Sequence record: KU521356.1
Reading direction: 5' to 3' (one strand)
Length of the DNA stretch: 64,000 nt
This document shows positions 6,149 to 59,608 of this stretch, piece after piece. The notes below the pieces were generated by a model, which was not told where the DNA came from, searched no databases, and worked only from the letters and a program-made list of their open reading frames with translations. Every line of letters starts with the position of its first letter. The stretch's first letter is position 1. A program made the translations under genes and the position numbers.

Positions 6149-6202
6149 CATAAAGCCCTCCCTTCGGGGAGGGCTATTGCACTAAATTTTATTTGAGATC
6201 TA
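6149..6202 (+). repeat. 54-bp terminator + early-promoter cassette, copy 1
   Basis: Identical to 21620..21673 (CATAAAGCCCTCCCTTCGGGGAGGGCTATTGCACTAAATTTTATTTGAGATCTA). Confidence 0.9.
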
Positions 6203-47944: not shown

Positions 47945-48067
47945 GTAAAGAATACCCAAATCGGGATCTCCCGGACTATCTCCCTTCAGCGTTCCCGTCC
48001 GCAAATGAAGGTGCCGCCGAGATCCCACCTATTGATAATGCCCTCCCTTCGGGGAGGGCATTATTTC
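47945..48067 (+). ncRNA. Candidate structured RNA B (about 120 nt, possible pseudoknot)
   Basis: TATGTA at 47942; GGGATCTC/GAGATCCC, CGGAC/GTCCG and CCTTCA/TGAAGG pairings; 40 of 64 core nt are G/C; UUCG terminator 48040-48059. Confidence 0.6.
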
Positions 48068-48102
48068 GCTTAAGCCTATTTATTTTATTATAAGGAGTGA
48101 AA

Positions 48103-53905: not shown

Positions 53906-54049
53906 TATAGAAGTTCCTTTATTACAATGTAGTATATAACCTTTATTAAATTAGGTTATATACCGGCTATGGAAAAGGCCTCGTCACCTTCCCTTCACCT
54001 ATATTAAATATCAATAGTGGTTATAAAGAACGAGATACACTCATTGACA

Positions 54050-54162
54050 TAATATAGCCAGGGGTGGCAAACCCCTGGCATTCAGACACACTCTATAATT
54101 AAATCTACCACCGAGTGTATTTAGTGGATAGCTTTAGGATTATCTAGATAAAGTAATCCTAC
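54050..54162 (-). ncRNA. Candidate sRNA C (about 110 nt)
   Basis: TATGTAG at 54165-54159; AGGATTA/TAATCCT 5' hairpin; ACACTC/GAGTGT stem; GCCAGGGG/CCCCTGGC 3' hairpin. Confidence 0.4.
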
Positions 54163-56818: not shown

Positions 56819-56894
56819 TGGTCGGAGTGGGGAGACTCGAACTCCCGACATCCTGCTCCCAAAGCAGGCGCGCTACCAACTGCGCTACACTCCG
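56819..56894 (-). tRNA. tRNA-Pro(UGG)
   Basis: Cloverleaf, CCTGC-TTTGGGA-GCAGG, encoded CCA. Confidence 0.97.
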
Positions 56895-56903
56895 TATTTA
56901 AAT

Positions 56904-56988
56904 TGGTGCCCGAAGTCGGATTCGAACCGACAAGACCGTAGCCGGAAGATTTTAAGTCTTCTGTGTTTACCAATTTCACCATTCGGGC
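56904..56988 (-). tRNA. tRNA-Leu(UAA)
   Basis: Class II cloverleaf with long variable arm, GAAGA-CTTAAAA-TCTTC, encoded CCA. Confidence 0.97.
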
Positions 56989-57046: not shown

Positions 57047-57499
57047 TCAACGTGGCCATTGTAAAGAAGTTATCTTATTACCATTAATGTAGACATCGGT
57101 CACTTCGCACCAATCATTAATTCTGTGTTCAATAATTGGAACATCATTTCGGCCAGCCACTCCAATCATATTCCATTTAACATAAATATTCATTAGATCA
57201 ATTGTTAATTTCTCTTTTATGAGTTTAGGAGAAATTAATTTAATATTATTAATGTTAAAGAAGTAATTATTAACTTCTTCTAAATATTCATTAGTATTAG
57301 TAGTACTAACTTTGCCTTCATGTTCAAGTGAGGATGGTTTATTCTGATTTACAATATTGCTCACTAGACTTCTTAAAACGGCACTTGCCCTACCAGCTTC
57401 GCGTCTTTTATACTTATCATAGTCTTTTACATTAGCTGCAATTTTATCAAATTCTTTTTGGGCATAGATTAGCCCTGGTAAAAGTTCATTTTTGATCAT
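57047..57499 (-). CDS. Late protein, possibly head-associated
   Basis: TATGTA upstream; internal SSLEH resembles an S-x-E head-protease site. Confidence 0.6.
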   Translation of the reverse strand: MIKNELLPGLIYAQKEFDKIAANVKDYDKYKRREAGRASAVLRSLVSNIVNQNKPSSLEHEGKVSTTNTNEYLEEVNNYFFNINNIKLISPKLIKEKLTIDLMNIYVKWNMIGVAGRNDVPIIEHRINDWCEVTDVYINGNKITSLQWPR

Positions 57500-57559
57500 G
57501 TTATAATTACTCTATTTTATTTATACATATTTTAAGGTACACTAGTAAAAAACAAAAAA

Positions 57560-57702
57560 AATATAAAGCCTCCCCGAAGGGAGGCGATATATCGTCATTA
57601 ATGCCCAGCAAAGAGTTTTACTCTCTGGGAGCCAGTTGGAAGGGGGACTGGCTCCGATTTATTATGACTAATGTAGAAACGAGGGGGAGGGATCATTTCT
57701 AC
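57560..57702 (-). ncRNA. Candidate sRNA D (about 140 nt) with two C-rich loops
   Basis: TATGTAG start; three hairpins plus a closing stem; loops GAUCCCUCCCCCUC and CCCCCUUCCA; UUCG terminator with long U tract. Confidence 0.65.
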
Positions 57703-57724
57703 ATATCATTACATACTCAGTAAG

Positions 57725-59608
57725 TTATTCTTCAATACCAATGAGCGTATTGCGTTCATTAGTGTTCTCTACGGATGAACCACTTGGGAAGCTACTGATA
57801 GACGCTTGCATTAGTTTCAACATATCGATAGCAAATACTCGATAGGTAGATTCGACCTTAGCATCGTCGTACGCTGCATGAATGTTAAGAATGATATTAT
57901 CGGCCCGTTTAGCCAGCAGATATACGTCCTCAAGAGCATCTTTATCTTTAATAGTGGATAGCTTATGTTTGTAGATATCCCCATTGACAGATAGGTCAGG
58001 ATACTGGGCTACCCAAGTGTCCGCAATAGTCTTAGTGTTGTTAGACAGAACGTCAATGATAACGTTAGCTGCTTCCACAATACCGGTAGCATCAAGCAAC
58101 TTAATCTTAGCACCAGCATTATCTGGCCATTTGGGTTCTTGGAAGTTTGTCTTTACATTGGGTTTCCATTCAGCCAGAAGAGTAGCGACTTTCTTAGGGT
58201 CTTGCCAATCATTCCCTTTGAACAGATTAACCACGGGGGCTAGTATCTTACTGTTCTCATCCAGAACTTTCTGGTTGTGACGATCAGCTTTAGCTACAGC
58301 ATTAGTGATATTGGCTTTTGCGGTCTTAGGATCATTAGACGCGAACGTCTCGTAACTCGATACTTTTACTTCGCCGGTTTTAAGCTTTGCTTCTGCCACC
58401 CATTTGGCATCACCATAGGTACTTTTCAGTGTAGCAATAGCTTTCTTCTTTTTATCAAGATTGATCTCAGGGCCAGAGTCGAAGATACTCTTAATGGTGT
58501 CGATAAGACCTTCATTTGAGACTTGTATAAAACCGGGAGTATTAATGATGGACTTCTCTACATACCCGCCACGAATAACTCGATTTATAAAACCATTAAG
58601 ACCACTACCAGTTTCGGCCATATCTTTCATGATTTCTATATTTGTTTCACCAGCACTCTGGGCATTGTATAAATAATAAGAACCATCTTTAAATTTTAGT
58701 ATAATCCAGTCATCTCCAGTTAGATATGAATCAATATTACTATCATTCATACTTTGGTATTTAATGAATTCTGGATTAGTACTTAGTACTTCTTCAATAA
58801 ACTCTTCTAATGCCGCAGAATTATTAATAGCATCAACAGGTGGAATTTCACCATCAATGGGTTCAGTAGTTGGACCAGTAACAATGGCAGGTAACGGATC
58901 CTCCTCTACAATAACAGTTTCTTCCACTGGTAGAGCACCACATGAAGCATCAATTAGTTTATTAAAACTACTAATGATCTCACCAAGTGCTACAAGAACT
59001 GCTGGCTGTTCAACTTGTTCAACTTTAGCAATACCAGTTTCTGTAAATTCTTCAGTGATTCGGTTATAAACTTCTACTAGTTGGTTAGTAAGTTCTGCTA
59101 CTTTTGGCAGAGTCTGCTTAGACAGAGGTTCAACTACAGTTGTATCTGCTTCAACAAAAATAGAATCATCTTCTTCTAAACGGCTAGTATTAGCTGAGCC
59201 AGCTGTGAAGTTATAAGGCATATCTTGAATTACTTCATTAATTTCAGATGCCTCCATATCTTCATTTAGACGACCACTATAAGTACGCATCATACCTTCT
59301 GCTTCTTTAATAGTGGAATGCGCTAAGCGTCCCCAATCACCACGCATAATACCGCGCTCGGTAAGACCGCGTGCAGCTGAACCAAGATCAATAGGTTCTT
59401 CAATAAATGATTGTTCTTCAACCCACTCCTCATTACTGTAACATTCTTTTAGAATGGTTTTAAATTTAGTACTAAAGGGTTGTAGAATCTTTTTATCTAC
59501 TTGTTCAACATTTGTTTTAAAGTGTTCTAGACTTGGTGTAGCTTTTGAAGATACTTTTTCAGTACCGCTATATAGCGTACGGTTTAGGAAGTTTAGCATT
59601 TTATTCAT
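57725..59608 (-). CDS. phiKZ-type internal head protein
   Basis: Acidic N-half with S-x-E sites (PSLEH) and VSNEGLIDTIKSIF, typical of phiKZ inner-head paralogs. Confidence 0.7.
   Translation of the reverse strand: MNKMLNFLNRTLYSGTEKVSSKATPSLEHFKTNVEQVDKKILQPFSTKFKTILKECYSNEEWVEEQSFIEEPIDLGSAARGLTERGIMRGDWGRLAHSTIKEAEGMMRTYSGRLNEDMEASEINEVIQDMPYNFTAGSANTSRLEEDDSIFVEADTTVVEPLSKQTLPKVAELTNQLVEVYNRITEEFTETGIAKVEQVEQPAVLVALGEIISSFNKLIDASCGALPVEETVIVEEDPLPAIVTGPTTEPIDGEIPPVDAINNSAALEEFIEEVLSTNPEFIKYQSMNDSNIDSYLTGDDWIILKFKDGSYYLYNAQSAGETNIEIMKDMAETGSGLNGFINRVIRGGYVEKSIINTPGFIQVSNEGLIDTIKSIFDSGPEINLDKKKKAIATLKSTYGDAKWVAEAKLKTGEVKVSSYETFASNDPKTAKANITNAVAKADRHNQKVLDENSKILAPVVNLFKGNDWQDPKKVATLLAEWKPNVKTNFQEPKWPDNAGAKIKLLDATGIVEAANVIIDVLSNNTKTIADTWVAQYPDLSVNGDIYKHKLSTIKDKDALEDVYLLAKRADNIILNIHAAYDDAKVESTYRVFAIDMLKLMQASISSFPSGSSVENTNERNTLIGIEE

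Follow-up and report, generated by a model that had tools for sequence, protein, structure and literature searches.

The window analysed here, a stretch of 64,000 nucleotides from sequence record KU521356.1, is the last 64 kb of a phiKZ-type Pseudomonas phage genome and is 100% identical to KTN4 and SL2. On its minus strand, at 57560..57702, lies a small RNA of approximately 141-143 nt that starts directly behind the stop codon of the PHIKZ303 homologue and that is the KTN4-type copy of transcription unit TU237 of phage phiKZ. The transcript itself was already known; newly added here are its conservation in Phikzvirus, Pawinskivirus and phiPA3 and a fold of three hairpins (A, B and C) that is supported by covariation across these three genera. 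As a tentative explanation, to which we would give close to an even chance, we propose a late, independently transcribed, non-coding RNA of phiKZ-like phages, approximately 141 nt long, that acts in trans through C/U-rich seed loops. Pairing of these loops with G-rich sites resembling the Shine-Dalgarno (SD) sequence is our best guess, drawn by analogy with characterised small RNAs.

Transcript and fold of the small RNA

In phiKZ, transcription was mapped by ONT-cappable-seq (ONT, Oxford Nanopore Technologies; Putzeys et al. 2024, microLife; PMC10914365; preprint 10.1101/2023.10.13.562163). The late-class promoter P144 has its transcription start site (TSS) at 274148(-), terminator T131, classed as intrinsic, has its transcription termination site (TTS) at 274007(-), and the gene-free unit between them, TU237, is 141 nt long and was confirmed by Northern blot (Putzeys et al. 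2024, PMC10914365). The authors labelled TU237 '5'UTR_PHIKZ302 ncRNA candidate', a non-coding RNA (ncRNA) classed as derived from a 5' untranslated region (UTR), left its function open, and offered neither a structure nor a conservation analysis (PMC10914365). P144 is absent from an earlier differential RNA sequencing (dRNA-seq) study of the early infection phase, and TU238, the PHIKZ304-303 mRNA, ends at the same T131 terminator (10.1101/2023.10.13.562163). The non-virion RNA polymerase starts at a TATG directly after the PHIKZ303 stop and most transcripts end at the T131-type terminator, with the same sequence doubling as the 3'UTR of the PHIKZ304-303 mRNA. In the literature after Putzeys et al. 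2024, we found no paper that gives the RNA a function or mentions its C-rich loops. In Table S7 of the preprint (10.1101/2023.10.13.562163), the entry for phiKZ 274148-274007(-) prints as 'Sequence (5'-3')' the plus strand, i.e. the antisense, so that the loops of TU237 look G-rich there; the RNAfold value of -48.7 given for TU237 presumably refers to this antisense strand, and the neighbouring minus-strand entry 270595-270485 is printed in the correct orientation.

Position 274149 of phiKZ corresponds to G57702 of the window, and since the two sequences are 95% identical over the RNA with zero indels within it, the published ends translate to window positions 57701 and 57560. The late-type phage promoter of the window occupies 57702..57716 (minus strand), with an invariant TATG at 57705-57702; a second TATG upstream (57715-57712) reads TATC in phiKZ. 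The TSS equivalent is U57701, with G57702 within mapping error, so that the RNA starts 2-3 nt inside hairpin A as drawn in the DNA. Position, flanking genes and homologous sequence agree with TU237, and the intact TATG and terminator delimit approximately 141 nt, which serve as TU237 and also as the 3'UTR of TU238. The original prediction, made from the letters of this stretch, had proposed a discrete late small RNA of ~140 nt starting from TATG, and its span matches the phiKZ transcript (TSS 274148, TTS 274007, 141 nt, Northern blot) almost to the base. In phiKZ-infected cells the RNA is therefore a distinct and stable non-coding species, bounded by a promoter and a terminator of its own, and the sequence correspondence suggests that it also accumulates in cells infected with the window strain.

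The exact transcript (57702-57560) is predicted to fold with a minimum free energy (MFE) of -55.9 kcal/mol; dinucleotide shuffles gave -30.6 +/- 3.4 (z = -7.54), and 0/200 of them were as stable. The MFE structure is identical to the centroid. Hairpin A (57671..57704, minus strand), found in both, consists of a 5' arm at 57704-57693, the loop UCCCUCCCCC at 57692-57683 and a 3' arm at 57682-57671, and has a 12-bp stem in the full DNA hairpin. It is followed in the MFE structure by a three-way-junction domain (57594..57668, minus strand), in which an outer stem of GUCAU (57668-57664) and AUGAC (57598-57594) surrounds hairpins B and C. Hairpin B (57628..57655, minus strand) has the stem GGAGCCAGU/ACUGGCUCC and presents the loop CCCCCUUCCA at 57646-57637, and hairpin C (57609..57627, minus strand) reads CAGAGAGU-AAA-ACUCUUUG. 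Both C-rich loops have an unpaired probability of ~0.99. The intrinsic terminator, equivalent to T131 (57551..57585, minus strand), is formed by GCCUCCC-UUCG-GGGAGGC (57585-57568) and a following UUUAUAUUUUUUUU, with the 3' end at ~57560. The elements foreseen from the sequence (TATG, hairpins A, B and C, the GUCAU/AUGAC stem, and the UUCG terminator with its U tract) all lie on the minus strand where they had been placed. Only the proposed extension of hairpin C by CCCAG/CUGGG did not hold up, as it competes with hairpin B and is not conserved, and the covariation backs the CAGAGAGU/ACUCUUUG register.

Phage terminators have in common a sequence motif, BCCYCCCCHWWDGGGRRGGBYTTAT, that goes beyond shape. 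Read directly, the T131 terminator (CGCCTCCC-TTCG-GGGAGGC-TTTATAT) is a near-fit with a 6-nt instead of a 7-nt G/C core; one position short of the 7-nt C run, this 3' element of the RNA belongs with the phiKZ-type intrinsic terminators, and 8 more terminators of the T131 type occur in the window. A covariance-model search detected no paralogue in the window or the remainder of the KTN4 genome, and the RNA is single-copy. When the window was screened for hairpins with C/U loops, only hairpins A and B had stems of at least 8 bp; 7 such hairpins were counted in all, with A and B each entering as two register variants, and this total falls inside the 0-9 obtained from shuffled sequence.

A small protein was considered as a product of the locus and rejected. 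The statement that the element holds no open reading frame (ORF) is literally incorrect, since a 32-codon ATG ORF runs through 57598-57696(-), and is right in substance: phiKZ has ATA in place of the ATG, and in relatives whose loop A is shorter by 4 nt the frame is shifted, so that the ORF is neither conserved nor coding.

Conservation and covariation in three genera

The 501 bases round the locus are 100% identical in KTN4, SL2, FBPa36 and Pa_AttikonH10 and 93-97% identical in further Phikzvirus genomes. By BLAST and synteny, the element was also located with ~73% identity in the Pawinskivirus-type phages PS119XW, phiLBG22, phiHQ, BRkr, PA1C, HHBS36_1 and HPP-Temi, and a copy in phiPA3 was first found by eye. 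In all three genera the stop codon of the PHIKZ303 homologue is directly followed by ATATGTAGA, at which the element starts, and a phiKZ-type terminator closes it; ATATGTAGA is invariant in 9/9 variants. A scan of IMG/VR, JGI metagenomes and 185,579 species genomes with a hairpin-B pattern returned only phiPA3, PA7 and chance matches, and no copy in chromosomes of Pseudomonas or other bacteria.

RNAalifold, run on nine distinct variants, predicted hairpins A, B and C and the terminator. A covariance model built from the eight Phikzvirus and Pawinskivirus variants, with phiPA3 left out, recovers the phiPA3 copy with 66.6 bits (E = 1.7e-12). In the covariance-model alignment, standard pairs fill 96.4% of cells, compared with 36-47% when the partners are slid by 1-3 columns; 10/28 pairs are changed on both sides, compared with 0-2 in the slid controls, and 0/500 shuffles reached the observed values of pairing and covariation. 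The changes are spread over the hairpins: 7/11 stem pairs of hairpin A are changed on both sides across genera, the two loop-closing pairs of hairpin B covary (U-A/C-G and G-C/A-U/C-G) with 100% of cells paired, and alignment pair 82-94 of hairpin C is A-U, G-C or U-A in the three genera with 93% of cells paired. The outer stem recurs at the same place in relatives with unrelated sequence (ACCACAGC/GUUGUGGU in PS119XW and a CUCGGCGC-based stem in phiPA3); such stems are not alignable column by column and were therefore regarded as shared architecture and not counted as covariation.

Conservation is highest in loop B, where CCCUUCCA and 8/10 loop columns do not vary among the three genera. Loop A varies in length and sequence: KTN4 has UCCCUCCCCC, phiKZ UCCUUCCCCC, Pawinskivirus UCACUCCU and phiPA3 CCUACUCCU. 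Save for single A residues it is rich in pyrimidines, and a CUCC or CUUCC core is always present. Outside the loops, the relatives have one or two more single-stranded C/U motifs, Pawinskivirus both CCCCUCCUUU and UUCUCCUU and phiPA3 UUCUCCUU, and all of these motifs could pair with GGAG, with a G-U wobble in the case of CUUCC. The loops are thus single-stranded and more conserved than the stems presenting them, as is expected of seeds, with conservation of loop A confined to its core. The original prediction had named loss of the loops in relatives as a ground against it and a covariation alignment as a check; the loops are retained and the alignment across genera supports all three hairpins. 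It fared less well with loop A as a mimic of the 3' tail of 16S rRNA (GAUC-CCUCC), a likeness that is not conserved: the GA lies in the stem and is AA/UU in phiKZ, and the invariant element is loop B. The label 'anti-SD-like' accordingly stands in the loose sense that the motifs could pair with GGAG, and not as a specific likeness to the 16S tail. Overall, the comparison adds a sequence-based indication that selection acts on the sequence of the exposed C/U-rich loops.

Selection of this kind could also reflect a protein partner. In that explanation, the loops would be sites for a phage or host RNA-binding protein, serving as a decoy or sponge or in export, stability or processing, both in the free RNA and in the PHIKZ304-303 3'UTR. 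The module always lies directly after the PHIKZ303 homologue with a terminator in common, an invariant loop with covarying closing pairs suits protein recognition as well as RNA pairing, and the phage genome offers no convincing RNA target. However, multiple interchangeable C/U motifs that vary in sequence, number and context are more typical of base-pairing seeds, and we know of no protein in the phiKZ system that binds C-rich loops. We consider a protein-binding role unlikely.

The genomic surroundings bear on whether the RNA serves a particular neighbouring gene. The locus lies on the minus strand between the homologues of PHIKZ303 (57725..59608, minus strand; 627 aa, a virion/head structural protein according to annotation and phrog_24656) and PHIKZ302 (57047..57499, minus strand; 150 aa, function not assigned). 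Genes for tRNA-Leu and tRNA-Pro (56819-56988) lie 3' of the PHIKZ302 homologue, and those for tRNA-Met, Asp and Asn further on. In phiKZ, the late promoter P143 (TSS 273977), which the dRNA-seq study saw too, lies just downstream of T131, and units TU233-236 read through from P144 into PHIKZ302 and the tRNAs (10.1101/2023.10.13.562163). The P143-equivalent late promoter for PHIKZ302 and the tRNA genes in the window (57525..57529, minus strand; TATG at 57529-57526, with AAAATATGTA present) lies ~35 nt downstream of the 3' end of the small RNA.

According to the published '5'UTR-derived' reading, the element would be a cis-acting leader or conditional terminator that tunes read-through from P144 into PHIKZ302 and the tRNAs, the short RNA being a by-product. 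This agrees with the shared P144 TSS of TU233-236 and with the two strict modes of transcription from P144, short and long, that the authors describe (Putzeys et al. 2024, PMC10914365). However, Phikzvirus has PHIKZ302 after the element, Pawinskivirus tRNA-Leu and phiPA3 gp374, so that no linkage to one downstream gene is seen, and P143 provides PHIKZ302 and the tRNAs with a separate promoter. When loop A was forced to pair with the 3' arm of the terminator, a pseudoknot-free model gave a penalty of +13.1 kcal/mol in the window and of +9.4 and +15.7 for the equivalents in PS119XW, where the extra C-rich strand was likewise tried; the loop sequences are conserved without taking part in the terminator, and no leader or riboswitch family of Rfam reaches threshold. 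A cis-acting antiterminator was rejected as energetically unfavourable, with no competing fold of comparable stability, and not conserved. The differing downstream genes, together with the separate promoter, point to a self-contained module rather than the leader of one gene and favour a trans-acting RNA. The leader reading is in our view quite unlikely, and read-through from P144 looks like ordinary terminator leakage.

Several observations on the locus stand beside this argument. Positions 1-50,000 of the window match KU521356.1 215594-265593 exactly, an offset that puts the window end at the record end. For phiKZ, fnug, PaZh_1 and others, the alignment to the window is confined to positions from ~57716 downwards, and the PHIKZ303 3' end of these strains differs, with a protein of 646 aa compared with 627 aa in the window. 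Phikzvirus strains therefore have a breakpoint, by mosaicism or recombination, just upstream of the promoter of the small RNA. The PHIKZ303 homologue ranges from 627-646 aa in Phikzvirus to 233-250 aa in phiPA3 and Pawinskivirus and 736-768 aa in Phabio and 201phi2-1 (coordinates in the relatives' loci: L006 4154-4855; L003 754-1506; L009 2468-4678; L011 2462-4768). Despite this length variation, the DNA junction GAAGAATAACTTAC and the promoter are nearly the same in KTN4 and Pawinskivirus. The stretch from the junction domain to the terminator is longer by 35-60 nt in Pawinskivirus and phiPA3 (loci L003 1626-1700 and L006 4975-5010), and UUCUCCUUGUUGUGUUGAUG within it is common to both and absent from phiKZ and KTN4; CCCCUCCUUUC also occurs there in Pawinskivirus. 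In 201phi2-1, Viktualia and Phabio, whose hosts are other Pseudomonas species, the syntenic locus lacks C-rich loops. Directly after the PHIKZ303 homologue these phages have a different short unit with a TATG start, 80-130 nt and a terminator (L011 4795-4870; L010 3950-4030; L009 4683-4810), which looks like a positional analogue, with no sequence similarity to the phiKZ-type RNA.

Candidate partners of the exposed loops

Based on the fold and its conservation, and considering what is known of C-rich loops in other small RNAs, we propose the following hypothetical mechanism, in which (i) the RNA acts in trans; (ii) redundant seeds are provided by its C/U-rich loops, chiefly by the invariant CCCUUCCA of hairpin B; (iii) these seeds pair with G-rich sites of the GGAG/GGAAGGG type, typically the SD regions of mRNAs; and (iv) pairing lowers the translation or stability of the target mRNAs, as with ar14/NfeR1, RsaE/RoxS, RNAIII and 6C. 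The weak, A-rich ribosome-binding sites (RBSs) of the phage itself would be poor partners, and the targets would more likely be a limited set of G-rich sites, in host or phage, than host RBSs in general.

The RBSs of the 113 annotated genes in the window are of the types AGGA (43), AGGU (38), AAGG (33) and GAGG (26), with GGAGG rare. The duplexes that they form with the 16S tail have a median of -5.7 kcal/mol, those with the loops medians of -3 to -4 kcal/mol, and only 4-7% reach -8 kcal/mol or lower with the loops. That such weak AGGA/AGGU/AAGG sites are poor partners of the loops had been anticipated by the original prediction and is borne out by these medians (-3 to -4 kcal/mol). A model GGAG site pairs with the loops at approximately -6 kcal/mol and G-extended sites at -9 to -12, so that bulk titration of host RBSs is unlikely and G-rich extended sites would be needed.

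The latter result bears on the more far-reaching suggestion of a global host-translation shut-off, in which a free anti-SD mimic would titrate host GGAGG RBSs in bulk and spare the phage mRNAs. The weak, A-rich RBSs of the phage and the departure of host mRNAs from ribosomal fractions in phiKZ infection, reported in a Grad-seq study, are in line with it. However, the likeness to the 16S tail is not conserved, plain GGAG pairing yields only about -6 kcal/mol, and stoichiometric titration of all host mRNAs would demand extreme abundance; furthermore, the host-mRNA shift probably precedes the RNA, the promoter of which is late-type and was not detected by early-phase dRNA-seq. A block of host GGAGG-type RBSs on this scale, as first envisaged, is highly improbable, the least likely of the explanations considered.

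The loops might instead pair with other G-rich RNAs, either the GGGRRGG arms of roughly 60+ phage terminators, thereby modulating termination or 3'-end stability, or the GGA-rich RsmY/RsmZ. The complementarity that had been pointed out between CCCUCCCC and the 3' arms of phage terminators is indeed exact (GGGGAGGG); CCCTCCCC occurs in 7 copies in the window compared with 0.35 expected, six in terminators and the seventh being loop A, and terminator arms dominate the best partners in the phage genome. That the phage terminators have a common sequence motif, and not shape alone, would fit such a role. However, the 3' arms are locked in 6-8-bp G/C tetraloop hairpins that form co-transcriptionally, and loop A of Pawinskivirus and phiPA3 (CACUCCU and UACUCCU) pairs with only 4-5 nt of their own GGGAGG arms. 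Because the arms are locked and loop A matches them poorly in the other genera, we rank terminator pairing low and consider this group of partners very unlikely. Seven identical CCTCCCTTCGGGGAGG terminator cores were observed on the plus strand, including those at window positions 6157, 17632, 21183, 21628, 24686, 34844 and 48042; several extend to a palindrome and can therefore be read as terminators on both strands.

Several results weigh against pairing of the loops in trans with SD-like sites. In a duplex scan of the whole KTN4 genome, 161/408 sites at -13.5 or lower were G-rich terminator arms, which were the sole strong partners and are sequestered in stable hairpins; no standout site near an RBS and no target was found in the phage genome. 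As the scan probes included a few stem nucleotides, the energies have to be read as upper bounds on affinity. Ordinary GGAG sites form weak duplexes with the loops by themselves (~-6 kcal/mol). The number of CUCC/CUUCC motifs in KTN4 and phiKZ is not significant against the RNA's own dinucleotide composition (3 vs 1.5, P = 0.11-0.16) and reaches modest significance in PS119XW (P = 0.009) and phiPA3 (P = 0.03), so that the argument is one of placement and conservation, not of counts. The covariation draws on only about four independent lineages, which limits its power, and the covariance-model alignment was fitted to the modelled structure and leans towards it. Finally, the RNA is made inside the phage nucleus, and its export to the cytoplasm is an assumption.

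Taken together, we regard an anti-SD mechanism as a reasonable hypothesis that is better founded than before. To the published transcript, the comparative evidence adds a conserved gene-like module (not a leader), a fold covarying in three genera, and signs of selection on the exposed C/U loops, so that an anonymous 'ncRNA candidate' becomes a concrete hypothesis open to mutant tests. In a bolder version, an RNA family of three genera with two to four redundant anti-SD-like motifs would leave the phage nucleus late and silence host or early phage mRNAs with strong G-rich RBSs, while phage messages with weak SD sequences would keep the ribosomes; this full scenario is quite doubtful. To our knowledge, functions are known for very few small RNAs of virulent phages. 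Should the loops indeed pair with RBSs, the RNA would represent a rare case of a lytic phage biasing translation by RNA, and one would have to ask how a non-coding RNA gets out of the phage nucleus; selective silencing of mRNAs with strong SD sequences would amount to an RNA-based arm of translational takeover.

Comparison with known small RNAs

Other small RNA candidates of jumbo phages include phiKZ sRNAgp182 and its 201phi2-1 counterpart sRNA005, as well as ncRNA1 and ncRNA2 of PAK_P3. Like these, the RNA described here is a short structured transcript that runs from a TSS to a nearby terminator and is retained in other phages of its genus or of further genera, whereas its sequence and fold are unrelated to theirs, for none of which C-rich loops have been reported. 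Two further published ncRNA candidates of phiKZ were located in the window. 5'UTR_PHIKZ289 (47946-48068, plus strand; fold z = -5.3) contains several CUCCC motifs, mostly paired, and a perfect CCCUCCC-UUCG-GGGAGGG terminator, and has another architecture than the small RNA; '3'UTR_PHIKZ298 / 5'UTR_PHIKZ297' is expected by offset at ~54038-54148 on the minus strand, and its published sequence is without C-rich loops.

DapZ/MicL-type small RNAs are embedded in 3'UTRs and have their own promoter. The phage RNA likewise has its own TSS at the end of the upstream gene and shares its terminator with the upstream mRNA. In contrast to DapZ/MicL, its promoter lies just after the stop codon and not within the coding sequence, and the phage polymerase transcribes it.

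With RsaE/RoxS, the hairpins of RNAIII and Mycobacterium 6C, the phage RNA has in common C-rich stretches exposed in apical loops. Such loops pair with G-rich RBSs in these systems, often redundantly. There is no sequence or Rfam relationship between them and the phage RNA, which is virus-encoded and late and belongs to a Gram-negative host with Hfq.

The closest parallel is provided by ar14/NfeR1. Against Rfam, no family reached its gathering score; the best matches, STnc100 (to the terminator only) and ar14, were far below it, and with 19.9 bits for ar14 (RF02344) compared with a gathering threshold of 58.8 (E = 0.05-0.56), the RNA does not belong to this family. In the Rfam alignment, however, loops A and B fall on two of the anti-SD loops of ar14 (CCUCCUCCC). 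The anti-SD motifs of ar14/NfeR1 are redundant, Hfq-independent seeds that occlude RBSs and are carried on stems of unrelated sequence, and the phage RNA similarly presents unpaired C/U-rich anti-SD motifs on several hairpins with unrelated stems. The two differ in their motifs, which are CCCUCCCCC and CCCCCUUCC in the phage RNA and three identical copies of CCUCCUCCC in ar14, so that the phage RNA has two differing C-rich loops and a third hairpin with the loop AAA. They differ also in junction architecture and in origin, from a phage of a gammaproteobacterium on the one hand and alpha-rhizobia on the other. The phage RNA is therefore an analogue of ar14 rather than a member of its family, and what the two share is a design principle.

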